Positions 1-64,000 of a DNA stretch of 64,000 bases are shown here, piece by piece. Both the position numbers and the translations under genes were made by a program. The stretch lies in sequence record OQ708376.1; one strand, written 5' to 3'. Every line of letters begins with the position of its first letter. Within the stretch, counting starts at the first letter, position 1. The notes beneath the pieces are model-generated. The model did no database searches, was not told the origin of the DNA, and saw nothing but the letters and a program-made list of their open reading frames with translations.

Positions 1-137
1 AGTAGGCAGAGGAAGTCTGCCGTACTTTGTAGTTTCCAAGCTCCTTTTCCATTTTTCAAATTACATCAAATGTAATCAAAAGTAATCACGCAATGATTAG
101 TACTGAATTATTACTTTCACCTTAATTACAATTACCC

Positions 138-157
138 TTTTACCCTTCGGGGTAAAA
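138..157. other. perfect hairpin TTTTACCC-TTCG-GGGTAAAA
   Basis: 8-bp inverted repeat closing a cUUCGg tetraloop in gene-free DNA. Confidence 0.7.
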
Positions 158-779
158 TTCAATTACCCCTTGAGGCTCCAGCAAAAAGTTGGTTAGTACT
201 CCATCCTAAATCTCGATCCTAAAAATTTTGGAGTACCTATGAAATAAAAGTTGGATCTTCGAAAGTTGAAATTTACGTTGGGACGTTTATGATTTGTGGG
301 ATATAATGATGTTTGTAGACGGGTAGTTCTCAAGAATATCAGTACTGAAAGATGAAAGAAAGTTATTGACTTTATGATTCAGTACTGTATAATGTTCTAC
401 ATAGGGTGATGAGTTGCTGCGAACAATTCATTTACTCTACCTCCTGTCGTGAGACAGTACAGAAAAGATAGTTCCTCCTGTGGTGGTACATCTTTTTGAA
501 CCTCATATGAAAATCGTAATAACAGTACTGATATTAACAGAATGGTGTCAGTACTGATTTTAATCTAAAGCATTATGCCACCAGCACAAGCTGGTGGATT
601 CCCTCTAACAGTATTCAGTACTACATGATGGTCTTCATCCTCCTAGGGTAACATAGTGAGGGCTATGATGGCAGTACTGAATACTCCCTTTCAAAAGATA
701 GATCTATGGTATAGTACTGACGGATTTTGGGCGTAGTTACCCTGGATGGATTTTGGGCGTAGATATGTCTAGCCCTCCA

Positions 780-907
780 GAAGTCTGGAAGTAAAGATGG
801 CTATCCATCTAGACGGCTAAACGGCTAGATTTCTGGATGGCTGGATGGCTAGACGTTTGGACGGCTAAACGGCTAGATGGTTACACGTCTGGAAGTATAG
901 ACGGCTA
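780..907 (+). repeat. degenerate 8-bp tandem array, 16 units, consensus GAYGGCTA
   Basis: gatggcta/gacggcta/aacggcta units stay in exact 8-nt register from 780 to 907. Confidence 0.8.
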
Positions 908-1074
908 AATCAAAATTTTATTTTGTTTTTTCCAATAGTTCCCCTACCGCGTGGGGATAGTTTCCCCGCAGTATCTGGTGTTAGATTTTTCTGAATCTGG
1001 AATCATTATCTTATAAACTGGGGGCAATGTCAACGGCCTGGCCGGATATTTTTAAAAATTTTTTCAGTACTGAA

Positions 1075-1125
1075 TTTTGGGCGTAACTATGCACCCGGTG
1101 GGCTTGAGTCTTTCTCGACTTGATG
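1075..1125 (-). ncRNA. candidate small RNA S1 (CCCA-NN-GGGTG family)
   Basis: TTGCTT-16-TATAAT on - strand, then hairpin AGTC-GAGAAA-GACT and AGCCCACCGGGTGC; no ORF. Confidence 0.45.
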
Positions 1126-1224
1126 GAACTATTATACAGTACTGGAAAAATAAAGCAATACCCTGGAAGCAAAAAAGTTTTAATTAATTTGCTTGCTATC
1201 CTGGGCCGGACTATGGTACTATAT

Positions 1225-1280
1225 TTCAGTACTGAGAAAGTGCGTTTACCTGCTAGGGTGCGGGAGTGTATCCTTTTTTT
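1225..1280 (+). ncRNA. candidate small RNA S2 (degenerate)
   Basis: ACCTGCTAGGGTGCGGGAGTGTATCC followed by T7. Confidence 0.35.
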
Positions 1281-1294
1281 ATATCTTGAATTTT

Positions 1295-1341
1295 GGACGG
1301 ATCTTCCCACCCCCTGGGGTATCCGCTTTCTCGCGTCTATG
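1295..1341 (-). ncRNA. candidate small RNA S3
   Basis: TTGACT-16-TATAAT on - strand, then CCCAGGGGGTGGGAAGATCCGTC. Confidence 0.4.
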
Positions 1342-1536
1342 TAGTAATTATACGCTTTTTCAGGATCAAGTCAATACCTAAAAACAAAATAATTGAAAAT
1401 AATTTAACGCGTTTAAACGGCCTGTAAAGCCCTGGAATGATTGGAATGGTGCAAATGTATAGCTTATGTGTATTAATGCGTTAGAATGCGTCTGAGGACG
1501 TTTTACGGGGTATAGGGATGATTTAGTGGATTGATT

Positions 1537-1623
1537 CAGTACTGAATAATAGTACTCCTATATAGAAAGATAGTTCCCCTGGATGATTGCAGTACTGAAT
1601 AATAGTACTCCTATATAGAAAGA
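1537..1623 (+). repeat. 34-bp perfect direct repeat x2
   Basis: cagtactgaataatagtactcctatatagaaaga at 1537-1570 and 1590-1623. Confidence 0.9.
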
Positions 1624-1737
1624 AAACTATTTTAAAAGTATTTGTAGAAAGTACTTGCACCGTACTGATAAAAGCGTATAATGTTTTACATCGAGAGCGG
1701 GAACACTTCCCGCTACACATTAAGAGAGATTAAAACG

Positions 1738-2100
1738 ATGGCGACTCAAATCAATAAAATCATGCTTAACCTGGTAAACTTCCGCGATGAGATGAAAGGT
1801 CTTCCGGCTGAAACTGTAAAAATTCACATTGCAGCTTATCGGGAACTTATTGCAATGTTGCCGCTTAAGCGTGAACAATACGCCGCTACTTTGATGCTGG
1901 ATTCAATGATCCATATAATGATCTCAAATGATTTGACGATGGTTTATCAGTATATGGGCGAAAATTTCGCGGTGTGTAGTAAGCCAGTACCAGGGATGGC
2001 AACAACTGAGGAATTGCACGGCTTAAACTTAAAACAAGATGCATGGGATAATATGCCTCGTTTCCTGGTATGGGCTGACAGTGGCAAAATTTACAAATAA
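1738..2100 (+). CDS. hypothetical early protein
   Basis: ATG after promoter-hairpin-RBS cassette. Confidence 0.8.
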   Translation: MATQINKIMLNLVNFRDEMKGLPAETVKIHIAAYRELIAMLPLKREQYAATLMLDSMIHIMISNDLTMVYQYMGENFAVCSKPVPGMATTEELHGLNLKQDAWDNMPRFLVWADSGKIYK

Positions 2101-2193
2101 GTTTAATAAAGTACTTGCAAACTATGTTTAATGGCGTATAATGTTTTACATCAGGTGGGGAATAGTTCCCCACTATATAAGAGGATTAAAAAA

Positions 2194-2433
2194 ATGGCTA
2201 AATCAAAAATGTTCTTAGGTCACAAAAACAAAACTCATTGGAATGTAAGCCTTTGGATTAATAACGATGAGGGATTGTATCGGTTGGCCCAGGACTTTAT
2301 TAACGATAGCACTAATCGCAATGATGCGGCCCGTCATATGATGTTATTTTTAGAACAGACTGGACAAGATAAAACACCGGACGGATTCAAATATAGCACT
2401 ACTGCGATCCGTGCGGCGATGGTTGGAATGTAA
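2194..2433 (+). CDS. conserved phage hypothetical protein (WNVSLWINNDEGLY...TPDG)
   Basis: GAGGA RBS; motif recalled from a widespread phage family. Confidence 0.8.
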   Translation: MAKSKMFLGHKNKTHWNVSLWINNDEGLYRLAQDFINDSTNRNDAARHMMLFLEQTGQDKTPDGFKYSTTAIRAAMVGM

Positions 2434-2519
2434 TAGAATTTATTTAAAGTACTATCATTTTTTTGCGATAGTACTTTATAATAGTGTTTTATTCATACAC
2501 CAACGATAAGGGCAACAGC

Positions 2520-2786
2520 ATGAAAATTAAGTATTTTGCGACGCGTGAACAAGCTCGGATCGCCGCACGCCAGGACGGGGCAACGTTTAAAGATATGGGC
2601 GTACAATCGGAACGTGGTAAACGTTGGGCCATTGTAAAGCGTAGTACCGCCAGATCATTACAGTACTGGTTAGCGGCCTTAAAAAGTCCCGATAGTGTAT
2701 CGCGTCGAGTGGTAGAAATAAAGCTCGACCGAAAGGGCAACCGCGTGACCGTGTACCGTACTAAAAAGATTGCAGTACTTGAATAA
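2520..2786 (+). CDS. basic early protein, paralogue of 14497..14892
   Basis: shared ATREQARIAAR/FKDMG/RWA/DRKGNRVTVY motifs. Confidence 0.8.
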   Translation: MKIKYFATREQARIAARQDGATFKDMGVQSERGKRWAIVKRSTARSLQYWLAALKSPDSVSRRVVEIKLDRKGNRVTVYRTKKIAVLE

Positions 2787-2867
2787 AAAGTACTTGCAAA
2801 CTATGTTTAATGGCGTATAATGTTTTACATCGAGAGCGGGAACTCTTCCCGCCTATAACCTGGAGTA

Positions 2868-3104
2868 ATGAAAATGACTAATATGTATATGACTGAAGTT
2901 AAAACCGTAAAAGATACTACCACGAATAAAACTACTTACTTACAGCGGATCTGTGGTGTATGGCAACGTATCAGCAAATCAAAGTACTTTAAATTAACAT
3001 CATATGCAAACCGTTCGGATTCATTCAGTACTGAAATAAAAGGTAATAAAGTACACCAATACGGCACTTATTATTATTATAGCCTGGACGCGATTGCAGT
3101 ATAA
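2868..3104 (+). CDS. hypothetical early protein
   Basis: cassette with GGAG RBS. Confidence 0.75.
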   Translation: MKMTNMYMTEVKTVKDTTTNKTTYLQRICGVWQRISKSKYFKLTSYANRSDSFSTEIKGNKVHQYGTYYYYSLDAIAV

Positions 3105-3169
3105 GCAGTTTACAAATCTTTACAATTGCCGGTATTGACTTATTTTGTCAGTACTGGCATAATGTATTC

Positions 3170-3215
3170 ATTGGCAGATAAGCCGTAGCCCATAGGGTGC
3201 GGGAGTGTATCTATA
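3170..3215 (+). ncRNA. candidate small RNA S4
   Basis: TTGACT-17-CATAAT (3135-3163), then AGCCCATAGGGTGCGGGAGTGTATCTA. Confidence 0.45.
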
Positions 3216-3234
3216 GAAAAATTAGTTTAGTATA

Positions 3235-3273
3235 GTTACAATTGTGCACCCGGTGGGTTAGCTGTTGTCATGG
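3235..3273 (-). ncRNA. candidate small RNA S5 (convergent with S4)
   Basis: TTGACA-17-TATAAT on - strand, then AACCCACCGGGTGCACAATTGTA. Confidence 0.45.
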
Positions 3274-3389
3274 GGTATATTATACCAGTACTTGATAATG
3301 CTGTCAATACTTTTTTTTTACTATTCAGTACTGAAAACTATTTTTAAAAAGTACTTGCAAACTATGTTTAAAGGCGTATAATGTTTTAC

Positions 3390-3464
3390 ATCAGGACGGG
3401 GAACGAAATAAGTAACTTCCCGTTAAGTAGCCCAGGAGTAAGGCACACGAAAAACTCCCCTGAT
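3390..3464 (+). ncRNA. candidate multi-stem RNA J1
   Basis: promoter 3356; ATCAGG/CCTGAT closing stem with two internal hairpins; next promoter follows with no ORF. Confidence 0.45.
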
Positions 3465-3532
3465 AAAATAGTTTGACAAATGTTTTTAAAAGCGTATAAT
3501 ACTTACATCAACTACTGAATGAGGGTTACAAA

Positions 3533-4144
3533 ATGAAAACTATCACTACTACTACTTATGTTATGGCTTTTTCTGAATTGAACGCAGAACAACAAACGTC
3601 AGCTATCGAACTGGTTCGGGAACGTGAAAAAAACTCAAACGACAATTATTTTTCTGAAAGTGAAATTGAATACTATAAAGAAACAGTACTACCGGAATAT
3701 GGCATTAATGACGCTGAAATACAATTCAGTGGTTTTTGGTCCCAGGGTGACGGTGCATCAATCAGTACTGACCACGTTGACGCAGTGAAGTTTTTACGCA
3801 AGGTAAGAGCATTAACTAAGTATCGCTCAATCCGTCACTTGCTGAATGAAGATGATTTGGCGATGAGTGTAAAACGTTCGCACTCCCACTACTCGCATGA
3901 GAATACTGTAAGCGGGTACATTGAATCGGCTTACACTGATTTAACCGCAAAACAAGAAACGTTAGTTAATGAGCTTGAGGAACTACTCACTGAAACTATT
4001 CGTGAATTGTCCCGCAAGTTGTACCGTGATTTAGAGAATGCATATGAGGATCAATTCACTACTGAAAACATTACGGCACTGATTGAGGGTAACGAATATC
4101 AATTCAATGTTATTGATGGCGTAGTAGAATCAATCGAATATTAA
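3533..4144 (+). CDS. conserved phage protein (SGFWSQGDGAS family; often auto-annotated as antitoxin-like, unproven)
   Basis: FSEL...FSGFWSQGDGAS...HYSHE...LYRDLE..YE...NEYQF pattern; acidic. Confidence 0.8.
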   Translation: MKTITTTTYVMAFSELNAEQQTSAIELVREREKNSNDNYFSESEIEYYKETVLPEYGINDAEIQFSGFWSQGDGASISTDHVDAVKFLRKVRALTKYRSIRHLLNEDDLAMSVKRSHSHYSHENTVSGYIESAYTDLTAKQETLVNELEELLTETIRELSRKLYRDLENAYEDQFTTENITALIEGNEYQFNVIDGVVESIEY

Positions 4145-4236
4145 TTTAAAAAGTACTTGCAAACTAAGTTTAAAAGCGTATAATACTTTATATCGAGAGC
4201 GGGAATAGTTCCCGCTACTAATGAGGAATACTACAA

Positions 4237-4401
4237 ATGAATACTTTTACCTTCGCTCAATTGAACGCCCTGGATGTATTGTCTGATGCTTTGCGGGATG
4301 CAACTGAAAGCGGTTTATTTGACAATGTTGACATTCACCCTGATGTAATTAATAATTTTTGTGATGCTATCGCAGAAGTACTGGAAGATCTAAAAAAATA
4401 A
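4237..4401 (+). CDS. small acidic hypothetical protein (54 aa)
   Basis: below track cutoff; cassette and GAGGA RBS. Confidence 0.7.
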   Translation: MNTFTFAQLNALDVLSDALRDATESGLFDNVDIHPDVINNFCDAIAEVLEDLKK

Positions 4402-4489
4402 TAGAAAGTACTTGCAATTAGTTTTCAGTACTGTATAATGGTTTACATCAAAGGGAGAAATGGTTCTCCCTGGTAATGAGGAAAATACA

Positions 4490-4711
4490 ATGGCTAATAT
4501 CACTACTCTTTCCCAACTGGAAGCACTGGTTAAATCTATGCGGGAACATGCTGACAAAATCGGCGTACAAGATCCAGCCGTTTGCTTCTGCGACGAATTG
4601 AATGATGATACCCTGGTAATAGCAGAAGTCCAGGACGTTTCTAACTATTCCTCGCGTTACACTGGCGGCGTAGCAAATAAAGGTGACTTCTGTTTATACC
4701 TTACAAAATAA
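4490..4711 (+). CDS. hypothetical early protein
   Basis: GAGGA RBS after hairpin. Confidence 0.75.
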   Translation: MANITTLSQLEALVKSMREHADKIGVQDPAVCFCDELNDDTLVIAEVQDVSNYSSRYTGGVANKGDFCLYLTK

Positions 4712-4746
4712 CAACGCGGGGAGATAATAACTCCCCGTTACTTTTT
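4712..4746 (+). terminator. intrinsic terminator
   Basis: GGGGAG/CTCCCC stem and T tract. Confidence 0.6.
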
Positions 4747-4764
4747 CAGTACTGAATCATTTAA

Positions 4765-4812
4765 TAGACGGATCTCGGCACCCGGTGGGTTAGTGACTGT
4801 TTCGTCTTGATG
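4765..4812 (-). ncRNA. candidate small RNA S6
   Basis: TTGACA-17-CATAAT on - strand, then AACCCACCGGGTGCCGAGATCCGTC. Confidence 0.45.
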
Positions 4813-4954
4813 TAGTAATTATGCCAGTACTGGATGCACTTGTCAACAATTATTTTCCAAATACTTTTTATTAAAATACTTGCAATTAGTTTTTAAACGC
4901 GTATAATGTTTTGCATAGGGGGAGCGGTTCCCCTGGTAACTAAGGAATAATAAA

Positions 4955-5191
4955 ATGCTTGAACAAATCAAATCAACGTCTTCGAATGTAACGGGAACGG
5001 TAGCACACTTTACTAGTGATGAATCGCGGGGCGTTCCCTATTGTGCTGTACATGTAAACACTGAGGGTAACTACTGGTTTACGGTTTACGGATCATATTC
5101 ATTTGGACGGCCTGGACATCAAAAAATTCTGGATAAAGTACAACCAACGGGTAAAAATATCACTGCCGAAATGTTTTATAAAAAATCATAA
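4955..5191 (+). CDS. hypothetical early protein
   Basis: cassette and AAGGA RBS. Confidence 0.75.
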   Translation: MLEQIKSTSSNVTGTVAHFTSDESRGVPYCAVHVNTEGNYWFTVYGSYSFGRPGHQKILDKVQPTGKNITAEMFYKKS

Positions 5192-5275
5192 AGTACTTGC
5201 AATTAGTTTTTAGTACTGTATAATATTTTACATCGCAAGGGGAAACGGTTTCCCCTGGTAACTAAGGATAATCAA

Positions 5276-5575
5276 ATGAAAATTGCAATCATCGCCCTGG
5301 CTTTATCTGTTTCCTCTTTCGCTGTTAATGCGTCATTAGATGTAAGTAGTGAAAAATTCATTCAGTGCACTGTTGCAATGACCGATGAAAGAACTGGCGA
5401 GATTGTATTAAAGGATTTAGAGATCCAGCCGGAAGCATTTAAAAACGGCCCGTTCCATGAAGAAGACGAAAACGGTAGCACGACAATTTATTATGATGCC
5501 AGTACTAAACGCGGTTCGGTCACTGTAATGGATACCGAGAAAGTAACTCATACCGGCGTTATTAATTGCCGTTGA
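5276..5575 (+). CDS. exported/periplasmic protein
   Basis: signal peptide MKIAIIALALSVSSFAVNA; two Cys. Confidence 0.75.
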   Translation: MKIAIIALALSVSSFAVNASLDVSSEKFIQCTVAMTDERTGEIVLKDLEIQPEAFKNGPFHEEDENGSTTIYYDASTKRGSVTVMDTEKVTHTGVINCR

Positions 5576-5596
5576 TAGATACTACGGGGTAACATC

Positions 5597-5827
5597 ATGA
5601 CTAAGCGAATTGTTTTACTTAACGAAAGCAGTACTACACAACTACTTAACGCCGTGCATTATGATATTGAAACGAGCGTTAATCTTATCAGTACTGTAGT
5701 TCTGTTGGACACTGGAAAGGTAGCCAATGATAAAGCGATTGCAGGTATACTAACGGATCTTGTGCCTGGTAGCAGTGCACCAATAACGTTAAATGGTAAA
5801 GTGTTTAATATTTTACTCACTGATTAA
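5597..5827 (+). CDS. hypothetical protein
   Basis: ORF followed by terminator. Confidence 0.7.
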   Translation: MTKRIVLLNESSTTQLLNAVHYDIETSVNLISTVVLLDTGKVANDKAIAGILTDLVPGSSAPITLNGKVFNILLTD

Positions 5828-5833
5828 GTACAT

Positions 5834-5855
5834 AGCCCACCTGGTGGGCTTTTTT
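5834..5855 (+). terminator. intrinsic terminator
   Basis: AGCCCAC-CTG-GTGGGCT and T tract. Confidence 0.85.
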
Positions 5856-5944
5856 GTTTTTGTAGTATCGTAGTACTGAGATACTTTGAAAATAGTTTTA
5901 AAAAAGTAGTTGACATTACCACAGAAAAGCGTAGAATGTATTAC

Positions 5945-6017
5945 ATCAAGACGGGGAGCACTAAGTAGACCGCCAGTAAGTCGAACGAAAAACTGGACAC
6001 GTCGAGAAAACTTTGAT
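5945..6017 (+). ncRNA. structured leader/RNA J2
   Basis: shares ATCA.GACGGGGA, TAAGTAG and AGTAAG-N5-CGAAAAACT with J1/J3. Confidence 0.4.
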
Positions 6018-6060
6018 ACACTAATAAACGTAAACTAAACTTTAATTGAGGATTTATAAA

Positions 6061-6543
6061 ATGGCTAATGTAAAATCATTCATCAAAGCACTGGTAGCAA
6101 ATGAAACTAACGTCGCGGCTGAGATCCTGGCTGAACTGGATAACGATACCATGAAAGCGGTACGCAACAATTTTAACATTGCGTACAGTGAAGCTAAAGA
6201 ACTGCAAGCCAAAAAGGTAGCAGAACTGGAAGAACAGAAAAAAGCCCGTGAAGCAGAACTACAAGCAACAATTGAAAGTATTCAGGCGGCAGTGTCTGGA
6301 TTGGATCTGGAAGTGGTTGTAGAAATGGCACATAAAGCCCTGGCGGTTAAGTACGGTGAAGATAAGCCGGAATCTAAACCTAAAAAATGGATTCAAGAAC
6401 GTGTTACTGTAGTACTTGATAACGGTGAAGAACATTTGATTCCTGTACGCGGTAACTGCATTGCGGTAGTACTGGACGCTATCAAAGAAAGCGGTATGAC
6501 TCGCGAGGAATGGATCGAAGCTCATCGCAAAGTTGAAGCATAA
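6061..6543 (+). CDS. H-NS-like protein (putative)
   Basis: coiled-coil N-terminus; C-terminus VVLDNGEEHLIPVRGNCIAVVLDAIKESGMTREEW parallels H-NS [35 protein letters not shown]. Confidence 0.5.
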   Translation: MANVKSFIKALVANETNVAAEILAELDNDTMKAVRNNFNIAYSEAKELQAKKVAELEEQKKAREAELQATIESIQAAVSGLDLEVVVEMAHKALAVKYGEDKPESKPKKWIQERVTVVLDNGEEHLIPVRGNCIAVVLDAIKESGMTREEWIEAHRKVEA

Positions 6544-6564
6544 CAATTAAAGTACTGAATCACT

Positions 6565-6591
6565 AGCCCACCTTAAACAGTGGGCTTTTTT
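6565..6591 (+). terminator. intrinsic terminator
   Basis: AGCCCAC..GTGGGCT and T tract. Confidence 0.85.
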
Positions 6592-6828
6592 GTGTCTGTA
6601 GTATTCCAGTCCACCAGCACCGCCTAGAATCGATTCTAACGCATTAAACTGATTATCTGATACATCGCCCTAGCTGGTGGCGTTAAGGTCGTTAGAATGC
6701 GATTGAGAGCGTTTAAAGTATTTTGCAAAAAGTAATAAAAAGTACTTGCACGATTAAGAGATTAGCGTATAATGTTTTACATCGAGAGGGGGAAACGGTT
6801 CTCCTTCCAAATCAAAGGAATCAAAACA

Positions 6829-7056
6829 ATGGCTATTATCATTACTCGCGTATCTGGTACTACTGGCAACGAACAAGTAGTTGCAGTCATTACTAACAAG
6901 GCAGGTGCGGAATTGCAAAATGCAATGAATACCTGGGCCGTTAATGAGTTCGGTCAGTGGGCAAGTGTAGCATACATTGAAACCTATCAAGTGCCGTCGA
7001 TTAGTTTAACTGATTTGGGCGTTGAGCGTATCCTTTGCCTGGATGAATTAAATTAA
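6829..7056 (+). CDS. hypothetical early protein
   Basis: cassette and RBS. Confidence 0.75.
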   Translation: MAIIITRVSGTTGNEQVVAVITNKAGAELQNAMNTWAVNEFGQWASVAYIETYQVPSISLTDLGVERILCLDELN

Positions 7057-7142
7057 AAAAAGTACTTGCAAAGTAAATCGAATAAAGTATAATACATTAC
7101 ATCAAGGGGAGAAATGATTCTCCCCACTACAAGGAAACTAAA

Positions 7143-7355
7143 ATGGCTATCATTACTAAAATCAAAGTTAACAAGACTATCGTTAAACTGGCAGAAGTGA
7201 AAGAAGGTTATAAAGTATCTTGGTGCGGTATGTATCGGACGTTCGCAGATATAGATGATGCGATCAATTATTACAGTGACACGGTTAAAAACTTTGTTCG
7301 TGCTGATGTGGTTATGGCAGTGGCAACATATAAAGCAGCGAAAGAAAGTAAGTAA
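7143..7355 (+). CDS. hypothetical early protein, similar to 10054..10233
   Basis: cassette; MAII..K...G.Y.VS.....R...D/E.A pattern. Confidence 0.75.
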   Translation: MAIITKIKVNKTIVKLAEVKEGYKVSWCGMYRTFADIDDAINYYSDTVKNFVRADVVMAVATYKAAKESK

Positions 7356-7446
7356 AAATATTATCACAGTACTATTGACATAGTTTGATAGTACTGGCAT
7401 AATAGATTTTATCAAGACGACACATATTAATTTAAGGAATACTAAA

Positions 7447-7770
7447 ATGGCTAAAACTATCATCAACACCGTTTCCCTGGCTGCAATCCATGCAATCAAT
7501 GTTGACGGTAAACGTTGGACTGATTCATATGGCAATACTTATCATTCTTGTCATGTAAGCGTTGAACTGGATAACGGCTTGAATGATCTGGCGGTTGAAT
7601 CATTTACTTATGGCTATGAGGATGCATATCAACAAACGGCGGTATCACTCTTAAAGGAATCAGTAGACGGGCTTGATACTGTTGAAACCTCCCTCTATCG
7701 TTTGTGCAATGATCTTAATATCCCGTTGCATTGTACTGTACAGGATGTAAAACGTAAAAAAGATCTTTAA
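7447..7770 (+). CDS. early protein, paralogue of 14078..14401
   Basis: RWTD..GNTYHSC, FTYGY, DVKRKKD motifs. Confidence 0.8.
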   Translation: MAKTIINTVSLAAIHAINVDGKRWTDSYGNTYHSCHVSVELDNGLNDLAVESFTYGYEDAYQQTAVSLLKESVDGLDTVETSLYRLCNDLNIPLHCTVQDVKRKKDL

Positions 7771-7850
7771 TTAGCTTTACTTTATGCAGATACTTTGATA
7801 TAGTGTCTGCATAGGGGAAAGAAATTAAATCAACTTAAGAGGAAAGTAAA

Positions 7851-8120
7851 ATGAAAAATATCAGTACTTTAATCGATGCAGGTACACATGTTCGTCGGTC
7901 TATGGTTGCAACCAGTTCTACAAAACAAGTAGCGAGCGGTTATCTTGTATTTGTGCACGATGGAAAACTCCTGGAACGTTCAATCAATTTTGATGTTAAA
8001 AACAATTGCCGTTTTATTATCTTTCGCCGTGAACAATATAAAATTGATTTGCCAGCGAAGCCCATTAGCGGGGCGTACAACGTGCAATCATTGTTTGAGC
8101 GTCAACCTTACACCTATTAA
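7851..8120 (+). CDS. hypothetical protein
   Basis: GAGGA RBS. Confidence 0.7.
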   Translation: MKNISTLIDAGTHVRRSMVATSSTKQVASGYLVFVHDGKLLERSINFDVKNNCRFIIFRREQYKIDLPAKPISGAYNVQSLFERQPYTY

Positions 8121-8171
8121 TCAAAACATCGTTAGCGGTCGATTTAGGCCGCTTATATTGGGGATTATACC

Positions 8172-8444
8172 ATGAACGTTAATCAAGTACTGAATGAGAT
8201 CGAAAGCATCATTAAACCGATGAAGCGTACTGATGCTATGTTAACACCGGAAGAATGCCGCCTTTATGAGCGTTACAGCGTCGAACAAGTCCAGGCAATG
8301 GCTATGGCTACCCCAGCCGTTTCACCGCCTGAGAATGCGTTACAGGACGTTACAGGGGATTATATCATTAATCCAGTACTAGGGAAGATGACTGCAATCA
8401 CCGAAGATCAAAAAGACTACTTAAGCCAGTACTTAAAAGGTTAA
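8172..8444 (+). CDS. hypothetical protein
   Basis: ORF track. Confidence 0.7.
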   Translation: MNVNQVLNEIESIIKPMKRTDAMLTPEECRLYERYSVEQVQAMAMATPAVSPPENALQDVTGDYIINPVLGKMTAITEDQKDYLSQYLKG

Positions 8445-8449
8445 TTAAT

Positions 8450-8659
8450 ATGCTTACTGTACAGGATAAGATCGACATCTTAAAGGTTAATATGTATGTG
8501 ATTGATGCCGTACCTGGTAAAGTATTTGCATACGATGATAGTACTGTAAGCGATTTCTACTATAGCCAGGACGTGGGGGATCTTTCTGTACAGTCGGTTA
8601 TTGAAAACGTAGTTAATGCAGCGTATGAGCATTTACTTTCAAATAGTACTTGCAATTAG
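8450..8659 (+). CDS. hypothetical protein
   Basis: ORF track, operonic spacing. Confidence 0.7.
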   Translation: MLTVQDKIDILKVNMYVIDAVPGKVFAYDDSTVSDFYYSQDVGDLSVQSVIENVVNAAYEHLLSNSTCN

Positions 8660-8727
8660 TTTTTAAACGCGTATAATGTTTTACATGAAGGGGAGAAATG
8701 ATTCTCCCCAATAACAGGAGAAACAAA

Positions 8728-8880
8728 ATGAAACAATACAACGCTCGGTTTGATGTTACTATCGGTAACGGCAAAGGTCAATTCTCTTTCAGTACTCGCC
8801 GCAGTTATACAGAAAACTTCCTGCGTAATTGTGCACTGACCGCCGCTCAAATTAAACACTATTTTCAGGCTAAAAAATGA
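8728..8880 (+). CDS. hypothetical early protein (50 aa)
   Basis: cassette and AGGAG RBS. Confidence 0.7.
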   Translation: MKQYNARFDVTIGNGKGQFSFSTRRSYTENFLRNCALTAAQIKHYFQAKK

Positions 8881-9154
8881 AATCATTAGCTTATTACAGT
8901 TCGGCCCTGGTCGGTGCATTGATCGCGGCATTGTTAGTAACCTATCTATTCTTTATGGTGATTTAAATGAATCCAACAGGTTTAAACTATAAAAGTTGTT
9001 CTGCATTTACGAAAGCAAATAAAGCGAATGCACGTAAAGCGAAAGTACAGGAATACATCAAGCAAGGCATGACGCGAAAAGCGGCGATTATAAAAGCTAA
9101 AAATAAATGAAAAAAGTGGTTGACTTCGGTCAGCCATTTTGTTATTATATATTC

Positions 9155-9200
9155 ATTGAGAGATAGCTCACTAGCCCACAGGGTGCAGGAGTGTATCTAT
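9155..9200 (+). ncRNA. candidate small RNA S7
   Basis: TTGACT-17-TATTAT, then AGCCCACAGGGTGCAGGAGTGTATCTA. Confidence 0.45.
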
Positions 9201-9320
9201 TGTATGAGTATTGAGTACTGAAAACTATTTTTAAAAAGTACTTGCAAACTATCTCAATAAGCGTATAATGTTTTACATCGAAAGGGGAAACGGTTTCCCC
9301 TGGTAATAAGGAAACAAATC

Positions 9321-9662
9321 ATGACTATCTCAATTGCTCAATCTAACTTTGAAAATGAAATCATCGCCCAGGCACTGCGTTTAAATGATGGTCGGGCCGA
9401 AATTAATTACGGTTTCAATTCAGGCGGTTGCGAAAAATATCAGTACTTTGTAACGGCTGATGGCGGTGTCCTGGGTATCAATACAGTTATTGTAAACATC
9501 CAAAAAATTAATTTCAATGATCCAGACGATAGCCAGTTTTACATCACTGGCGTAGACGTGAACTATGAGGATGACTCACTAACTGATGATCACACTGGCG
9601 AGCGGTTAGAAAGTGCATACGGTGAAGATGATTATCAGTCCGGTCCAGAAGATTTCGAATAA
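9321..9662 (+). CDS. acidic conserved phage protein
   Basis: GG..YF.TADGGVL...VNYED..L.DDHTGERLESAYGE pattern; D/E-rich tail. Confidence 0.8.
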   Translation: MTISIAQSNFENEIIAQALRLNDGRAEINYGFNSGGCEKYQYFVTADGGVLGINTVIVNIQKINFNDPDDSQFYITGVDVNYEDDSLTDDHTGERLESAYGEDDYQSGPEDFE

Positions 9663-9758
9663 TATAAAAAAATAGTTTGACAATAGATTATAGTACTGTA
9701 TAATAGTTTACATCAAGGGGAGAAAAACTTCTCCCCACTAACAGAGAGAGAAAACAAA

Positions 9759-9971
9759 ATGGCTAATATCCGGTCGAAATTAAAAAATGCAAAACAAGTT
9801 TTATTTTCAGATCATGAATACTTTAATAAAGATATTACAGGAGTTACAAGTATCAAGGAAGTAAAAGAAAAAACCGGCGTTTTGTGTGATGTGCGATTAG
9901 TTGGAACATTTGGGAATAACGTGCTATATCGCTGCGGTGATTACAATTTTACACTGACTATCATTAACTAA
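9759..9971 (+). CDS. hypothetical early protein
   Basis: cassette. Confidence 0.75.
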   Translation: MANIRSKLKNAKQVLFSDHEYFNKDITGVTSIKEVKEKTGVLCDVRLVGTFGNNVLYRCGDYNFTLTIIN

Positions 9972-10053
9972 AAATATTATCACAGTACTATTGACATAGT
10001 TTGATAGTACTGACATAATAACTTTTATCAACTACACTATTAAGGAATTAAAA

Positions 10054-10233
10054 ATGGCTATCATCGCAAAAACTGAAATCGTTGGTCTGGATTCTATCAT
10101 CATGACGTTTGAAGATCAAAAAGGTATGTATGTAGTTTCATATGGTGATTATGTTCGGGAGTATGAAACGGTAGACGAAGCCTTTGAAAGTTACATTCGC
10201 CAGGTGAATAAAGCATACGACGATTACCGCTAA
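10054..10233 (+). CDS. hypothetical early protein (59 aa)
   Basis: below track cutoff; promoter 9991 and AAGGA RBS. Confidence 0.7.
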   Translation: MAIIAKTEIVGLDSIIMTFEDQKGMYVVSYGDYVREYETVDEAFESYIRQVNKAYDDYR

Positions 10234-10332
10234 AATATATTACCAGTACTATTAAAGATATTGACAACGTTTGATAGTACTGTATAATAAGTTTTATCAA
10301 CAGTAGTTAACTTAACCTAAGAGAGAAATAAA

Positions 10333-10476
10333 ATGATCGCACTGGATTCATTCATCGACGCAGTACTGGCAAAAACTGGCGAGGATCTGACCGCAGAACA
10401 ATACGCAATGATCGAGCAATGCCAGCAAGACGGTAAATCGGTGAAAGATACTGTTAAGATTATCCGCAAGATGTAA
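10333..10476 (+). CDS. hypothetical early protein (47 aa)
   Basis: promoter 10261, RBS, followed by terminator. Confidence 0.65.
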   Translation: MIALDSFIDAVLAKTGEDLTAEQYAMIEQCQQDGKSVKDTVKIIRKM

Positions 10477-10482
10477 GATTAT

Positions 10483-10510
10483 AGCCCACTGGTTAACGCT
10501 GGTGGGCTTT
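10483..10510 (+). terminator. intrinsic terminator containing a Chi site
   Basis: AGCCCAC..GTGGGCT-TT. Confidence 0.6.
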
Positions 10511-10581
10511 AATTCATTACCCTATACAATGCCAGTACTAAACCGTTTATCTCGTTAGAATGCGTTACAGGACGTTTAACA

Positions 10582-10779
10582 ATGATTAGCATGAAATCAG
10601 TACAAAAACAAATAGAAACATTATCAAAAATTAAACGTAAACAGTACTCCTTAGAATATACAATCAATGGTAACTATCATCTAATGAAAGAGAATAATTT
10701 TATAGTCATTGATGAATCATTGCAAATCATTAGTATAGTACTGAAAGCATTAATCAATGACAGAAAAAAATTAAAATAA
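10582..10779 (+). CDS. hypothetical protein
   Basis: ORF track. Confidence 0.55.
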   Translation: MISMKSVQKQIETLSKIKRKQYSLEYTINGNYHLMKENNFIVIDESLQIISIVLKALINDRKKLK

Positions 10780-10818
10780 ACTATTGACAATATCATCAAG
10801 TACTGGCATAATACTTAC

Positions 10819-10866
10819 ATCAAGACGAGAACGTCACTAACCCATAGGGTGCACAAATGTAACTGT
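10819..10866 (+). ncRNA. candidate small RNA S8
   Basis: TTGACA-17-CATAAT, GACG-AGAA-CGTC hairpin, AACCCATAGGGTGCACAAATGTA. Confidence 0.45.
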
Positions 10867-11110
10867 ATAATATTGATCAAAAAATGATCTGATCAATACT
10901 TGATCAATTTGCGTAAAGTAGTATAATTCTATGCAGTTGGTTAGACGAAAGGTTATGATTAGTAGTGCAAGTGTATAAAAATTTTCATGGTGTATCGTTT
11001 CGCACATATGGGGATGAATATGTGGTATCATGTGGATTGGAAAAAGTAAGAACAAGTAATATTATTGTCGCATTACAGTACTATAGTATTTTTATAATGA
11101 GGTTAAAATA

Positions 11111-11368
11111 ATGGCTGTAGGATTCGCGAAAGATGGGGCCGAACAAGACGAGATTAACGCAGTGATTCAGGCCGCCGTTAACCACGCTAGAAAGCAAATT
11201 AACGCACAAATAGAATCACTGATACATTGCCTCGACTGCGGCGATATAATCCCTGAGAATCGACGCCAGGCCGTTAAGGGATGTAAGTACTGCATAACTT
11301 GCCAGGAGGATCATGATAGTACTTTTAAACGTCCCCCGCGTAATTGTTGGCATAGATCTATGAGATAA
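11111..11368 (+). CDS. TraR/DksA C4-type zinc-finger protein
   Basis: MAVGFAKDGAEQD N-terminus; CLDC-x17-CITC; IPENRR. Confidence 0.92.
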   Translation: MAVGFAKDGAEQDEINAVIQAAVNHARKQINAQIESLIHCLDCGDIIPENRRQAVKGCKYCITCQEDHDSTFKRPPRNCWHRSMR

Positions 11369-11431
11369 AAAGTATTGACAGTACTGAAAGATAGTGTATA
11401 ATGTTTTATATCTTAACTGAGGATAGAAATC

Positions 11432-11788: not shown

Positions 11789-11860
11789 TACTTGCATTTA
11801 GTTTTCAGTAGTGTTATAGTACTTACATCAAGGGGAAACATCTTCCCCTACTAAGAGGAA

Positions 11861-12055: not shown

Positions 12056-12082
12056 TATTAATTTAATAGAGGATAACAATAA

Positions 12083-12406: not shown

Positions 12407-12489
12407 AAACTATTGACAAGATAATCTAGTACTGTATAATAAGTTACATGAAGGGGAGAAATGATTCTCCCCACTGAGAGGAAAGAAAA

Positions 12490-58871: not shown

Positions 58872-59492
58872 ATGCGTAGCATGATAATTCTACTGATGTT
58901 GATGCAATCAACGTCACGTATATTCATTGATGTTTCCATAGGAATAATGATGGCATTTATTAGAAAAGAAAAAACTGTTACTTATAAAACTTTGAATTTT
59001 GATGATTGCATTAATCAATCACAAGACGAAGATATCTTTACTGGATATGTGGTTATTAAAGAAAAAGGATGCATTTCTTATATAAAGGAATTGCAAAATG
59101 GAATTGAAGTAACTTCAGTTAAATTACTTCCTACTCAAAAACCAACAATATCAAAAGCCCAGTATGGTAATTATTTTGAAGAAAGATATAGTAATAATTC
59201 AATAAGTGTTAAGGCTCATATTATTAAAGGAGAACTAGAAGGAGAATATAGAAAATACAACCCACAAGGAAAATGTGTTTGGGTTAAATACTTCAATTCA
59301 GGATATGATGTAACATCTGAAATTATAGAGTTCTTAGGTTTAAAATGTACCCCTGAGACTATTCACGATTACAAGTTCAATACTGAAGAAGAGTTTAATC
59401 TGATGATGCGTTACGGTTCACATTTTAAATTTTTATATGAATATAACATTGACAGTAGTACTTTTGATAAGATAGTACACAACTGTCTCTAA
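58872..59492 (+). CDS. MORN-variant repeat protein (start uncertain)
   Basis: IIKGELEGEYRKYNPQGKCVWVKYFNSG; C-terminal NTEEEFNL. Confidence 0.65.
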   Translation: MRSMIILLMLMQSTSRIFIDVSIGIMMAFIRKEKTVTYKTLNFDDCINQSQDEDIFTGYVVIKEKGCISYIKELQNGIEVTSVKLLPTQKPTISKAQYGNYFEERYSNNSISVKAHIIKGELEGEYRKYNPQGKCVWVKYFNSGYDVTSEIIEFLGLKCTPETIHDYKFNTEEEFNLMMRYGSHFKFLYEYNIDSSTFDKIVHNCL

Positions 59493-59508
59493 CAAAAGGA
59501 ATTATATA

Positions 59509-60030
59509 ATGTCGAAGAAGGATGCTTCGAAAAAACATTCAGTACATTTTAGTACTGGAAAAGATAACTGGACAACTCCAAAGGATTTCTTTGAAGATTT
59601 GGATGAACTCTGGGAATTTACACTAGATGCAGCATGTGTCAAAGAAACTGCATTGTGTGATAATTTTTTCACTCCAGAAGATGATTCACTGTCACAGGAT
59701 TGGGGAAATAATATAGTTTGGTTGAATCCACCATATAGTGACTTGAAAACTTGGTTATCCAAAGCAGTAGATGCATATAATAACGGGGCAACTGTAGTTA
59801 TTCTTGTACCCTCAAGAACCGATACAATTGCTTTTCAGGATTATGCTGCTAAAATATGTGATTGTATTTGTTTTATTAAGGGAAGATTGAGATTTGGTAT
59901 ACCAGAAGAACCCGATAAGAAAACAGATTCAGCACCATTTCCTTCGTGTCTGATAGTACTGGATAAGTACTTAACCACTGCTAAAATCAATTATCTTAAA
60001 TCTCTTGGGTTGGTGATGAAGAATTTATGA
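59509..60030 (+). CDS. dam: phage DNA N6-adenine methyltransferase (Dam family, T1/HP1 type)
   Basis: WTTP..FF, FTLDAAC, WLNPPYS, LVPSRTDT, FIKGRLRF. Confidence 0.92.
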   Translation: MSKKDASKKHSVHFSTGKDNWTTPKDFFEDLDELWEFTLDAACVKETALCDNFFTPEDDSLSQDWGNNIVWLNPPYSDLKTWLSKAVDAYNNGATVVILVPSRTDTIAFQDYAAKICDCICFIKGRLRFGIPEEPDKKTDSAPFPSCLIVLDKYLTTAKINYLKSLGLVMKNL

Positions 60031-61731: not shown

Positions 61732-61738
61732 TGTACAT

Positions 61739-61766
61739 AGCCCGACATAAGTTCGGGCTATTTTTG
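61739..61766 (+). terminator. intrinsic terminator
   Basis: TAGCCCGA..TCGGGCTA and T tract. Confidence 0.8.
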
Positions 61767-61777
61767 TAAGGGGATAT

Positions 61778-62053
61778 ATGAATTATAAAGTTCTACAATA
61801 TACATACAGTGTTTTGTTTGATTTACATCACAATGGAAGATATCTCAATACAATACGAGAAAACACATTCACTCATACTATCTGGATTAATCACTTAATA
61901 ATGATACGTGAATATTTTGTTAATAGTGAGATAATCATTCGTGGTAAAAAACAGAAGATAGAACAAGTTAATAGTTTTGGTGGTAAATTAGTACTATCAT
62001 TTATAGATAGTAATACTAATGAAAGATATAGTATAGATTTGGTGGACATATGA
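61778..62053 (+). CDS. TYKxLY-family paralogue 1
   Basis: LQYTYSVLFDL. Confidence 0.75.
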   Translation: MNYKVLQYTYSVLFDLHHNGRYLNTIRENTFTHTIWINHLIMIREYFVNSEIIIRGKKQKIEQVNSFGGKLVLSFIDSNTNERYSIDLVDI

Positions 62054-62316
62054 ATTATAAAGATTTCCTACTAACATACAAGATTATTCGAGATTTAGCA
62101 CACGACAATGATAGCCCTAGTCTAGAAGACACATGCACTGAAATGATTCATACGATTCGTGGTAAGATTAAAAAAAAATTCAGTACTGTTATTATTGGTG
62201 ATGACCATGCAGAATTTTCTGATATAATCATTAGACGTGATGGTAAAGTTGAGGTTCAGTACTACACTGATTTTGGATTTACCAGTATTCCGTTGGAGAT
62301 ATTCCCTTGGGATTAA
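62050..62316 (+). CDS. TYKxLY-family paralogue 2
   Basis: FLLTYKIIRDL. Confidence 0.75.
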   Translation: MNYKDFLLTYKIIRDLAHDNDSPSLEDTCTEMIHTIRGKIKKKFSTVIIGDDHAEFSDIIIRRDGKVEVQYYTDFGFTSIPLEIFPWD

Positions 62317-62618
62317 ATTTAAATGATATACAATTCACTTATAAGATCCTATATGATTTGTATGATGTATACCTTGTTAGTAACAACATAGGTTCACATA
62401 ACCGATCCAAAGAACAACCATTTATTGATTTATATATTGAGTACTTAGATTCAGTAGGTGAATATATAAAAAAGAATTACAGTACTTTTATCGATGGAAA
62501 TGATAAATTCGATTTCTATGGTGTGCAATCATATAATGGTATAATCCATGTTCAATTTCAGGAAATAACCGATAGGGGATTTATCGAGATTAAAGTTGTG
62601 AAGTTGGTGAATTTATAA
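62307..62618 (+). CDS. TYKxLY-family paralogue 3
   Basis: LNDIQFTYKILYDLY. Confidence 0.8.
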   Translation: MGLNLNDIQFTYKILYDLYDVYLVSNNIGSHNRSKEQPFIDLYIEYLDSVGEYIKKNYSTFIDGNDKFDFYGVQSYNGIIHVQFQEITDRGFIEIKVVKLVNL

Positions 62619-62628
62619 GAGGTTACAT

Positions 62629-62940
62629 ATGTTATTAAATGATATACAATTCACATACAAATTTTTGTATATCCAATACGCTACGGTTGATGCTGGAGAA
62701 TATCTCTACAGTGAAATCTATCGTTCGGTATGGATAAAGTTTTTGGATGAATTACATGAATATTACCATGATTTGTGTATAGTTCGTGATAATAAAATAT
62801 ACAAATTCCGCGATATTGTTAGTCATAGCGGTAAGCTACGATTGGAATTAAGTACTGATAGTGATGTTGATTGGATTGGTGTAAATTTACTGGAATTGAA
62901 GAATGAAAAACAACTTAAAGGAAATACAAGTATTTTATAA
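62629..62940 (+). CDS. TYKxLY-family paralogue 4
   Basis: LNDIQFTYKFLY. Confidence 0.8.
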   Translation: MLLNDIQFTYKFLYIQYATVDAGEYLYSEIYRSVWIKFLDELHEYYHDLCIVRDNKIYKFRDIVSHSGKLRLELSTDSDVDWIGVNLLELKNEKQLKGNTSIL

Positions 62941-63187
62941 ATTCTTATACTTATCATATGTAAAAGATGAGTACTATGAAAGTGTGTATTATTTTTTATG
63001 GCAACATTACCGTACTATAGTAAGAGATTTATATATAGGAAAATCTATCATATCCAATGGTGAAAAATGTATCTGTACGGATGTAGTTAGTTTTAATGGT
63101 TCTTTAACACTGTGTTTCAGATGCGATAATAATAGTGGGTCATTTTCATTAAACGTATATCAGTTAGAAGGAATAAATTTTGAATAA
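62903..63187 (+). CDS. TYKxLY-family paralogue 5
   Basis: LKEIQVFYKFLY. Confidence 0.8.
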   Translation: MKNNLKEIQVFYKFLYLSYVKDEYYESVYYFLWQHYRTIVRDLYIGKSIISNGEKCICTDVVSFNGSLTLCFRCDNNSGSFSLNVYQLEGINFE

Positions 63188-63380
63188 ATGTCCATATTGT
63201 AACAGTACTCAATTAGCTCGTTTCCGTTTAGATTCAGACTGGGCGACTGGTGCTGGTGATTTCTTCCCTATTAATGATGATGCGGAATACACCGAAGAAC
63301 AACACAAAGATTTTGATAAATCATGGCGACCTGACATTGAGTGCATTTATTGCCTTAATTGTGAGCGTGTTCATGACTAA
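63180..63380 (+). CDS. zinc-ribbon protein
   Basis: CPYC ... CLNC. Confidence 0.75.
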   Translation: MNKCPYCNSTQLARFRLDSDWATGAGDFFPINDDAEYTEEQHKDFDKSWRPDIECIYCLNCERVHD

Positions 63381-63636
63381 AGCTGAACTAATAGTTCATA
63401 CATATAAAATGATATCAAGTACTGAGTTATCATATAGTGCAGATAATCCAGTACTGGATTATTTTGTTGAATTATTGAAAGAGCATTATATTGGTAAATC
63501 ACTGATTCTTAATAATATTAATTTCACGGTAAAGGATGTAGCACCTGGAAAAAACGTACTAATAGTATGTGTTACTTCATCTGATAACCCAGTATACCCA
63601 ATATCAATAATTTTTGAGATATTAGGAGATTTATGA
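63373..63636 (+). CDS. TYKxLY-family paralogue 6
   Basis: IVHTYKMI; YIGKS as in 62903. Confidence 0.7.
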   Translation: MTKAELIVHTYKMISSTELSYSADNPVLDYFVELLKEHYIGKSLILNNINFTVKDVAPGKNVLIVCVTSSDNPVYPISIIFEILGDL

Positions 63637-63923
63637 ATATCATTTTAATGCAGAAAACATATGCTATATTGGTGAAAGATTATTCCATTACTTTCGATTC
63701 ACAAGAAAGTGCTCTACATAACCTATACAAAAACGTAACACAAGAATACAGAAATATGTTTTCTGACTTAGTAGTAGGAAGGTATTTCAGTACTAGAAAA
63801 TACCCAAAACTTCAAATAGTTGATGTTTCTTTTTATTTCAATGGTCATATTACTATTCATAGTTTAGACCAAGATTCAACAACGTACTTAAACTTTTCAT
63901 TTGATGAGGTAACATTTTTATGA
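63633..63923 (+). CDS. TYKxLY-family paralogue 7
   Basis: MQKTYAILVKDY; VSFYFNG. Confidence 0.7.
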   Translation: MNIILMQKTYAILVKDYSITFDSQESALHNLYKNVTQEYRNMFSDLVVGRYFSTRKYPKLQIVDVSFYFNGHITIHSLDQDSTTYLNFSFDEVTFL

Positions 63924-64000
63924 GAACAGTATTTTTTATCTGGAGTCTTTTTTCATTGGCAGTACTGACAGTATGTGGGATTTGTTTCCTTTCATCAATT

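Follow-up and report, generated by a model that had tools for sequence, protein, structure and literature searches.

AGTACT, a highly iterated palindrome of Escherichia phage vB_EcoM_CRJP21 and a candidate site for a phage-encoded DNA-binding protein

Phages are expected to lose short palindromes, yet the word AGTACT stands at about ten times expectation throughout a clade of 350-kb phages, and the sequence analysed here raises the question of what keeps the word in place and what reads it. The window (the whole stretch of DNA that was analysed) comprises nucleotides 1-64,000 of Escherichia phage vB_EcoM_CRJP21 (OQ708376.1; genus Asteriusvirus; 366,301 bp), with which it is identical in sequence. 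It was found that selection on the DNA itself maintains AGTACT, a highly iterated palindrome; we further propose, tentatively, that the word is the site of a candidate two-fold symmetric (dimeric) DNA-binding protein encoded by the RaK2-like jumbo phages.

An initial annotation, made from the letters of the window, had proposed an extreme over-representation of AGTACT, and recounting showed the excess to be larger than claimed. The window holds 254 copies, compared with 17.3±4.3 (maximum 33) in dinucleotide-preserving shuffles, and the k-mer z-scores that had been recommended as a check identified AGTACT as the most deviant 6-mer of the window (z=58; order-1 Markov model). The local counts of 17 copies in 1-1700 and seven in 36650-37220 were reproduced exactly. 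For the word, to which a span of 99-63960 had been given, the first copy lies at 99 and the last starts at 63961, whilst the density in between is uneven and falls to zero in 20017-25193 and 27773-35320.

99-63966, both strands (palindrome): AGTACT, 254 copies (17.3 expected) in 228 distinct flank clusters
36650-37220, plus strand: coding stretch with 7 AGTACT, by count

Genome-wide counts were taken over the 346,149 bp of unique sequence, the second copy of the terminal repeat being excluded. These 346 kb contain 893 AGTACT compared with 99 expected, an excess of about 9-fold, and the word stands level with its own extension CAGTAC/GTACTG at the top of the over-represented 6-mers. Among the sixteen NGTACN words, strong enrichment was found only for that with A and T at the outer positions. 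The flanks are unique at 857 of the 893 sites, and repeats are therefore not the source of the excess. An order-4 Markov model predicts 210 copies in the window against the 254 observed, a test that is uninformative because the 5-mers already hold the AGTACT signal. Palindromes are otherwise avoided, as had been supposed (GCGC 0 compared with 177 expected genome-wide, GATC 0.6 and GGCC 0.44), and 26 six-base palindromes are wholly missing from the window. AGTACT is the recognition site of ScaI (PMC8919816), and the avoidance expected of a phage under restriction pressure was not seen for this 9-fold enriched word.

The bases adjoining the hexamer are weakly symmetric, with C at -1 and G at +1 in 42-46% of sites. 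The extended word CAGTACTG occurs 185 times genome-wide (4.3 expected), TTC directly precedes AGTACT at 86 sites (16 expected), and the optimal site is TTCAGTACTGAA, which is symmetric over 12 bp and clearest in non-coding DNA. An examination of site spacing for periodicity gave no more than a small rise at 20-23 bp, most of it due to promoters that carry two sites. Of the nine classes of single-mismatch neighbours, eight are enriched 1.2-2.2 fold, including all transition neighbours, and only the transversion neighbour AGGACT/AGTCCT is low; such mild enrichment is as expected for decay from selected AGTACT sites, not for a conversion drive.

Open reading frames (ORFs), defined by a simple longest-ORF rule, were subjected to synonymous-codon shuffling within each ORF, which preserves both protein and codon usage. 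The ORFs of the genome contain 762 AGTACT, compared with 220±14.5 after shuffling, and those of the window 175, compared with 51.6±5.9; codon and amino-acid composition, the explanation that the initial annotation had named as fatal to its reading, thus fails to account for the frequency. All three codon phases are used (387/140/235 genome-wide). The three readings of CAGTACTG, namely Ser-Thr, Val-Leu and Gln-Tyr, rank first, second and fifth among the over-represented dipeptides of the proteome, with the reversed pairs Thr-Ser and Leu-Val at the expected level, and Ser-Thr is written AGTACT in 387 of 711 pairs where codon usage predicts 109. The shuffling excess and the dipeptide bias therefore place the pressure on DNA, strong enough to skew protein sequence, and the amino-acid pair use of the clade's proteins is biased by AGTACT. 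Outside the terminal repeat the word is even along ORFs, at 2.0-2.7/kb for any ORF length and with structural and replication genes included, and the mean spacing of about one AGTACT per 390 bp compares with one per ~17 kb in the host sample.

Site conservation pointed in the same direction, such that the positive selection already proposed for the word can be said to act on DNA and not on protein. Relative to phage PBECO4 (96.5% identity), AGTACT was intact at 94.1% of sites and other hexamers at 85.4%, with ten sites private to CRJP21 and nine to PBECO4, and relative to ph0011 (87% identity) it was intact at 78.6%, compared with 65% for hexamers 7-40 bp away. A three-way comparison found AGTACT kept at 77.5% of sites and controls at 48.5%, with 28 sites present on one side only and 24 on the other only, so that gains approximately equal losses. 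Between genera, ~30% of core-gene sites coincide and most turn over; this coincidence was not counted as evidence, because conserved dipeptides and shared codon-pair choice can yield the same result. Selection per site would be weak, with density and not position maintained. In this respect AGTACT is like Chi, KOPS and uptake sequences, the density of which is held by weak selection with positional turnover, but those signals are asymmetric and oriented whilst AGTACT is palindromic.

Early promoters of the terminal repeat

Positions 1-20152 were found by whole-genome comparison to be an exact direct repeat of 346150-366301, and the first 20 kb of the window are therefore the left direct terminal repeat; terminal repeats of ~21 kb have been experimentally determined in relatives (PMC13070987). 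The features relevant here are as follows, the promoters being sigma-70-like consensus matches.

1-20152, plus strand: left direct terminal repeat, with small early ORFs each having its own sigma-70-type promoter, and 129 AGTACT
1-1680, no strand assigned: non-coding leader with which the repeat opens; 17 AGTACT, mostly (A/T)TTCAGTACTGAA(T/A)
366-393, plus strand: spacer-site promoter, TTGACT-N9-AGTACT-G-TATAAT, site at 381-386
2110-2142, plus strand: promoter in which the site adjoins the -35, AAAAGTAC-TTGCAA-N16-TATAAT, site at 2110-2115
4407-4439, plus strand: two-site promoter, sites at 4407-4412 and 4427-4432 with centres 20 nt apart, bracketing the -35
7368-7403, plus strand: two-site promoter with extended -10, AGTACT-A-TTGACA-N9-AGTACT-GG-CATAAT

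The density of AGTACT in 1-20152 is 6.4/kb, non-coding DNA (11.2/kb) being denser than ORFs (4.1/kb), and beyond 35.3 kb in the window it is about 3/kb. A 44-nt element occurs twice in the leader (1527-1570 and 1580-1623), each time with two AGTACT 13 nt apart. Within the repeat, AGTACT was located between -45 and -13 in 26 of the 39 strong sigma-70-like promoters, which bears out the earlier claim of fixed promoter positions, and the contexts AAAAGTACTTGCAA, AGTACTGTATAAT and AGTACTGGCATAAT that had been quoted for it are all present in the sequence.

Two places in the promoter are used. At the first, AGTACT stops 1-2 nt short of the -10 (AGTACTG-TATAAT, or AGTACTGG-CATAAT, which is an extended -10), and in 15 of the 39 CRJP21 promoters it ends 1-4 nt before this hexamer. 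At the second, AGTACT and the -35 hexamer overlap by one base, the final T of the word doubling as the opening T of the hexamer (AAAAGTAC-TTGCAA). AGTACT is not itself the -35 or -10 hexamer, since it adjoins these elements with one base shared with the -35, and ~760 copies lie inside ORFs.

The same arrangement was found in Klebsiella phage fENko-Kae01, which belongs to a different genus and has an experimentally determined repeat. In both phages AGTACT begins upstream of the -10 hexamer at one of two distances, 27-28 or 7-8 nt; the longer offset was 27 nt in nine CRJP21 promoters and 27-28 nt in 13 of fENko-Kae01. Four promoters in CRJP21 (with sites 20-22 nt apart) and seven in fENko-Kae01 carry two sites, and altogether 22 of 38 fENko-Kae01 promoters have AGTACT at offsets matching those of CRJP21. 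The fENko-Kae01 repeat contains ~5.7 AGTACT/kb, with the density falling at the repeat boundary, and here too the first 2 kb form the densest stretch (22 AGTACT). Some promoters are duplicated cassettes. The matching offsets in fENko-Kae01 therefore indicate a conserved promoter architecture that did not arise by accident in a single genome, and the word holds a position fixed relative to -35 and -10 and common to both phages, as would be required of an operator.

Related phages and AGTACT-free islands

Relatives were represented by 30-60-kb pieces and the host, E. coli K-12, by one 50-kb sample. AGTACT was the top 6-mer in the 42-kb syntenic core regions of RaK2 (76 copies), Serratia BF (88), Munch (66), GAP32 (90), XbC2 (92) and Hallingskeid (112), for each of which about 10-15 copies are expected. 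All seven further genera or lineages sampled beyond CRJP21, including that of fENko-Kae01, are enriched, although core proteins are only 62-66% identical between enriched genera, and all of the enriched phages infect Enterobacterales with the exception of XbC2. The outgroups PA5oct (1 copy compared with 14.9 expected) and XacN1 (0 compared with 7.7) avoid the word, and Vibrio phage 2.275.O is neutral (8 AGTACT). As the nearest outgroup jumbo phages avoid it, AGTACT has shifted from avoided to favoured within one lineage, and the RaK2-like clade acquired the trait at its base. The host sample contains 3 AGTACT per 50 kb, or ~0.06/kb compared with ~2.6/kb in the phage, a difference of about 40-fold.

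The absence of GCGC from the CRJP21 genome extends to every RaK2-like locus sampled, whereas this word occurs 26 times in PA5oct, 55 in XacN1, 35 in Vibrio 2.275.O and 342 per 50 kb (6.8/kb) in E. coli. This absence accompanies the enrichment of AGTACT, and suggests a lethal activity, perhaps encoded by the phage, that is specific for GCGC.

The two stretches of the window without AGTACT are the longest such stretches genome-wide, the next longest being 2.3 kb, and correspond to two islands.

20153-25193, plus strand: island 1, ~22 tandem overlapping small paralogous ORFs right after the repeat, without AGTACT
27773-35320, plus strand: island 2, ORFan genes of ~100-200 amino acids (aa), with 0 AGTACT, 0 TGTACT and 40 AGTACA

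The ~22 tandem ORFs of island 1 (20153-25300) encode products of 65-85 aa and apparently form one paralogous family (phrog_4148). The island contains ten TGTACT, apparently at homologous places of the paralogs, and is conserved in PBECO4 and ph0011; a reading of these TGTACT as an oriented signal was rejected, as they are probably due to paralogy.

In island 2, AGTACA, a one-base, non-palindromic variant, replaces AGTACT across a 7.5-kb block. All 40 copies lie on the plus strand with none on the minus strand, all three codon phases are used, and A follows 40 of the 41 non-palindromic AGTAC. About a third of these AGTACA can be traced to an FQYSTVH-like peptide that is conserved among diverged paralogs, and the rest are scattered. 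The pattern is identical in kind in PBECO4 and ph0011, and a smaller block follows the repeat of fENko-Kae01 at 22-26 kb (17 AGTACA, 5 AGTACT), the genes of which have no detectable similarity to CRJP21 genes. The island genes matched no Pfam family and only rare PHROGs. Outside the islands AGTACA equals the codon-usage expectation (90 compared with 89 in Ser-Thr pairs), for which reason its strand asymmetry was dismissed as a genome-wide feature. The palindrome can be specifically excluded while its one-base variant stays on one strand, and every model must cover that.

Candidate readers and competing explanations

The proposal of a phage-encoded dimeric protein that binds AGTACT is preferred as the best fit to three observations: an optimum that is symmetric over 12 bp, sites that bracket the -35, and an even distribution over the genome. 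We hold it with less than even confidence, however, and infer the step from sequence pattern to protein. At early promoters the proposed protein would be an operator-bound regulator that shuts off host RNA polymerase, whilst at promoters with a weak TTGCAA -35 it may assist that polymerase. Elsewhere, evenly spread sites would allow this protein to cover or order phage DNA selectively, because host DNA is almost without AGTACT. The operators of phage early promoters (lambda, P22 Arc/Mnt, SPO1 TF1) are comparable in that symmetric sites lie over the -35 and spacer and pairs are two helical turns apart; they are few and local, however, whilst AGTACT also occurs about 760 times inside genes.

Several observations weigh against such a protein. 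The promoters are putative ones, called as matches to a consensus, and a Pfam survey of ~445 ORFs of ≤320 aa yielded no helix-turn-helix, ribbon-helix-helix or TetR-type domain, most ORFs in the survey being without a family assignment. The sharp six-base specificity resembles that of a restriction-modification enzyme more than that of a typical transcription factor, and the 893 sites would be exposed to ScaI-type restriction unless modified or covered, in a phage that avoids most other palindromes. Finally, the 40 one-strand AGTACA of island 2, with AGTACT excluded, are not predicted by a simple homodimer-site model. The survey did yield nuclease-like domains (HNH, TnsA-like, PD-(D/E)XK and T5orf172).

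A further possibility, which we regard as doubtful, is that self and non-self are told apart by vocabulary and without modification, with a phage-encoded reader of AGTACT (~2.6/kb compared with 0.06/kb) acting alongside a second phage activity on GCGC, a word that the phage has entirely discarded; the system as a whole would also time early transcription, and the AGTACA block would be deliberately exempt from the reader.

One ORF of the terminal repeat (14955-15206) encodes a ParE-like toxin domain (PF24732, E=6e-11), and its upstream neighbour (14497-14889) is adjacent in fENko-Kae01 as well. This neighbour was rejected as a DNA-binding candidate: atlas hits were below chance level, there was no PDB sequence match, and its AlphaFold model (pLDDT 72, pTM 0.34) retrieved nothing from Foldseek at E≤0.001 and had no recognisable DNA-binding fold. 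The operators of YefM/Axe antitoxins have a TGTACA core, a GTAC-centred palindrome read by a small dimer, and are of interest as a lead only. They share with the phage a GTAC-centred hexamer, next to which can be set the ParE-like ORF in the repeat, but the outer bases differ, the YefM/Axe sites are confined to a single locus, and the ParE-like ORF has a neighbour without such a fold. Just downstream of the ParE-like ORF, at 15206-15240 and 15482-15516, are two promoter-like elements of the form TTGACAGTACT-N10-TAGTACTAT, in which AGTACT overlaps both the -35 and the -10.

Amongst the alternatives, an epigenetic mark survives best, though it too appears unlikely. Here a phage methyltransferase would modify AGTACT and the sites would be used as GATC is used by Dam in E. 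coli, whether in discerning parental from new DNA, as a replication-linked switch of early promoters, or as a shield against ScaI-type restriction. The window encodes one potential writer.

59509-60030, plus strand: Dam-family N6-adenine DNA methyltransferase, NPPY at residue 73 (Pfam PF05869, E=2e-31)

The initial annotation had taken this gene for a methylase laying down a self mark; its identity as a DNA methyltransferase was confirmed, whereas the self-mark role is weakened by its membership of the Dam family, the characterised phage members of which (PF05869) act on GATC. It is the only amino-methyltransferase recovered by a motif scan of the genome and, were AGTACT to be methylated, would be the candidate for writing the mark; homologues of at least 60% identity occur in 52 phage records, for example in an Escherichia phage (100%) and Klebsiella phage Muenster (67%). 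The motif scan and the Pfam survey found one other methyltransferase, a C5 enzyme at genome positions 278049-278909, outside the window.

A mark would suit the exact 6-bp palindrome, with its enzyme-like specificity, the presence of AGTACT inside promoters and the even spacing of ~390 bp, to which the spacing of GATC in E. coli is similar. It would also remove the liability of 893 unprotected sites in a phage otherwise avoiding palindromes, and the methyltransferase gene lies within the window. The Dam network of E. coli (mismatch repair, SeqA, and the promoters of mom, IS10 and pap) is comparable in its even palindromic sites, its regulatory clusters and the Dam-family enzyme that the phage encodes. 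GATC, however, is not many-fold above expectation in E. coli and is under-represented in the phage, and methylation of AGTACT is only hypothetical. Orphan methylation of AGTACT by a virus has been discussed for mollivirus (PMC7253447), which counts in favour of a mark. RaK2 DNA reportedly behaves as Dam-methylated, and bisulfite data for this phage placed methylated C within CpG (PMC3622015), both of which weaken the case for a mark. In addition, the only two methyltransferases found are of the Dam family, with GATC as the likely target, and of the C5 type; symmetric, T/A-rich sequence on either side of the hexamer is atypical of a methyltransferase target; and a mark by itself gives no reason why more sites should be better.

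A strand-read signal is improbable. Under this explanation the true unit is AGTAC(W) on one strand, recognised for instance by a primase, helicase loader or nicking enzyme, with the palindrome serving as an economical placement on both strands and only one strand being needed in island 2. It draws on the strand asymmetry of AGTACA and the lack of AGTACT in that island, on the similar block after the repeat in another genus, and on runs of AGTAC pentamers, such as AGTACAGTACAGTACA at 31428-31443. Outside the islands, however, AGTACA is explained by codon usage and has no consistent strand bias relative to gene direction, the flank preference of AGTACT is symmetric, part of the island signal comes from the FQYSTVH peptide, and the exclusion of the palindrome from the island is left without explanation.

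We give equally little weight to a functionless mutational or repair drive, in which biased mismatch correction, as proposed for HIP1, or very-short-patch repair would create AGTACT. A rough neutral estimate puts gains at about twice and losses at under half of the neutral level, which conversion bias would equally produce, and the conservation of density without position is also compatible with it. Very-short-patch type conversion was nevertheless rejected, as no single-mismatch neighbour is depleted as a source and transition neighbours are instead enriched. Genes resembling Vsr or MutH were not among the hits of the Pfam survey of ORFs, and neither the fixed promoter positions conserved between genera nor the sharp drop at the repeat boundary and the islands would be explained.

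Recognition by a host factor common to Enterobacterales, of which SlmA is the obvious candidate and the binding of which would block cell division, is very unlikely. The site of this TetR-family nucleoid occlusion protein, GTGAGTACTCAC, is likewise a 12-bp palindrome whose central hexamer is identical to AGTACT, bound by a dimer as is presumed in the phage (PMC3020112). The host range of the enriched phages, XbC2 apart, would agree with a host factor, and cells infected with phage Sharanji filament without a known division inhibitor (PMC11895373). SlmA, however, needs G, T, purine, A and G at positions 1-5 and tolerates C at position 6 (PMC3020112), whereas the phage consensus has T, T and C in place of the outer G, T and purine. 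The GTR flank is depleted (9 compared with 31 expected), the relaxed site has no match in 346 kb, GAGTACTC occurs only 4 times, and AGCACT is not enriched like AGTACT. SlmA binding was thus rejected on its flank requirements, and no SlmA-like protein was found in the phage.

That the excess is an artefact, whether of composition, of codon usage or of promoter cassettes present in several copies, as the order-4 Markov expectation and the duplicated cassettes might seem to suggest, is excluded for practical purposes by the synonymous shuffling in genome and window, the unique flanks and the enrichment of the same word in genera with such diverged core proteins.

The nearest known phenomenon is HIP1 (GCGATCGC) of the cyanobacteria, also a short exact palindrome that occurs about once per few hundred bp, lies in coding DNA in all frames and is conserved within a clade. 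A link of HIP1 to a methyltransferase is suspected, and it is not known to have an agreed function. AGTACT shares with HIP-like words a many-fold genome-wide excess, the use of all frames beyond codon usage, and a clade-wide distribution with preferential conservation. Unlike HIP1, it is found in a virus and not a cell, is 6 bp long and AT-rich, holds fixed promoter positions, is avoided by outgroups and has one block with a non-palindromic variant. AGTACT is unmentioned in the published accounts of RaK2, CBB, fEgEco12 and Sharanji, and combined full-text literature searches retrieved no description of it. The pattern would imply a centrally important sequence-specific protein or enzyme, without a name so far, in phages that are under study for therapy. 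Direct handles are available in a 12-bp probe (TTCAGTACTGAA, compared with TTCAGTACAGAA) for pull-downs, digestion with ScaI/RsaI, and one methylome run. Testable ideas for jumbo phages that do not form a nucleus concern the shut-off of early genes, the organisation of ~100 genome copies per cell, and the sparing of the phage's own DNA while that of the host is recycled, and the phages offer a smaller and faster experimental system than cyanobacteria for the HIP1-type question.

Other features of the repeat, genome and record

True Chi sites (GCTGGTGG) occur in the CRJP21 repeat 9 times on the plus and twice on the minus strand per 20 kb, where ~0.1 would be expected (an estimate from genome-wide figures), at 578, 590, 6611, 6673, 10498, 11960, 13228, 15578, 16983, 18560 and 18783. 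The fENko-Kae01 repeat holds 12 on the plus and 2 on the minus strand, some in promoter spacers, and the next 10 kb hold none. This clustering in the repeats looks like RecBCD protection of genome ends. Within the leader, positions 779-906 form an iteron-like run of degenerate 8-bp units (GGATGGCT, AGACGGCT, AAACGGCT), which could be a replication or packaging signal. CCCTGG is also over-represented (22 compared with 2.5 expected in the window, 32 compared with 17 genome-wide), mainly in 1-1700, where it belongs to repeated leader elements such as TAGTTMCCCTGGATG (734-748, 1571-1585).

The most under-represented 6-mer genome-wide is TAAATA/TATTTA (220 compared with 701 expected). The T4-type late promoter, TATAAATA, has this word as its core, and late promoters in stray places are therefore seemingly avoided.

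The product names in OQ708376.1 are displaced from the true genes by a variable offset, for instance at window positions 58950-60030, where the label 'methylase' stands on gp_149 and the Dam domain lies in the neighbouring gp_150; these names were not relied on. Nucleotide similarity to the CRJP21 terminal repeat (1-20000) was also found in 13 records named as Campylobacter phage, possibly through mislabelling or contamination.

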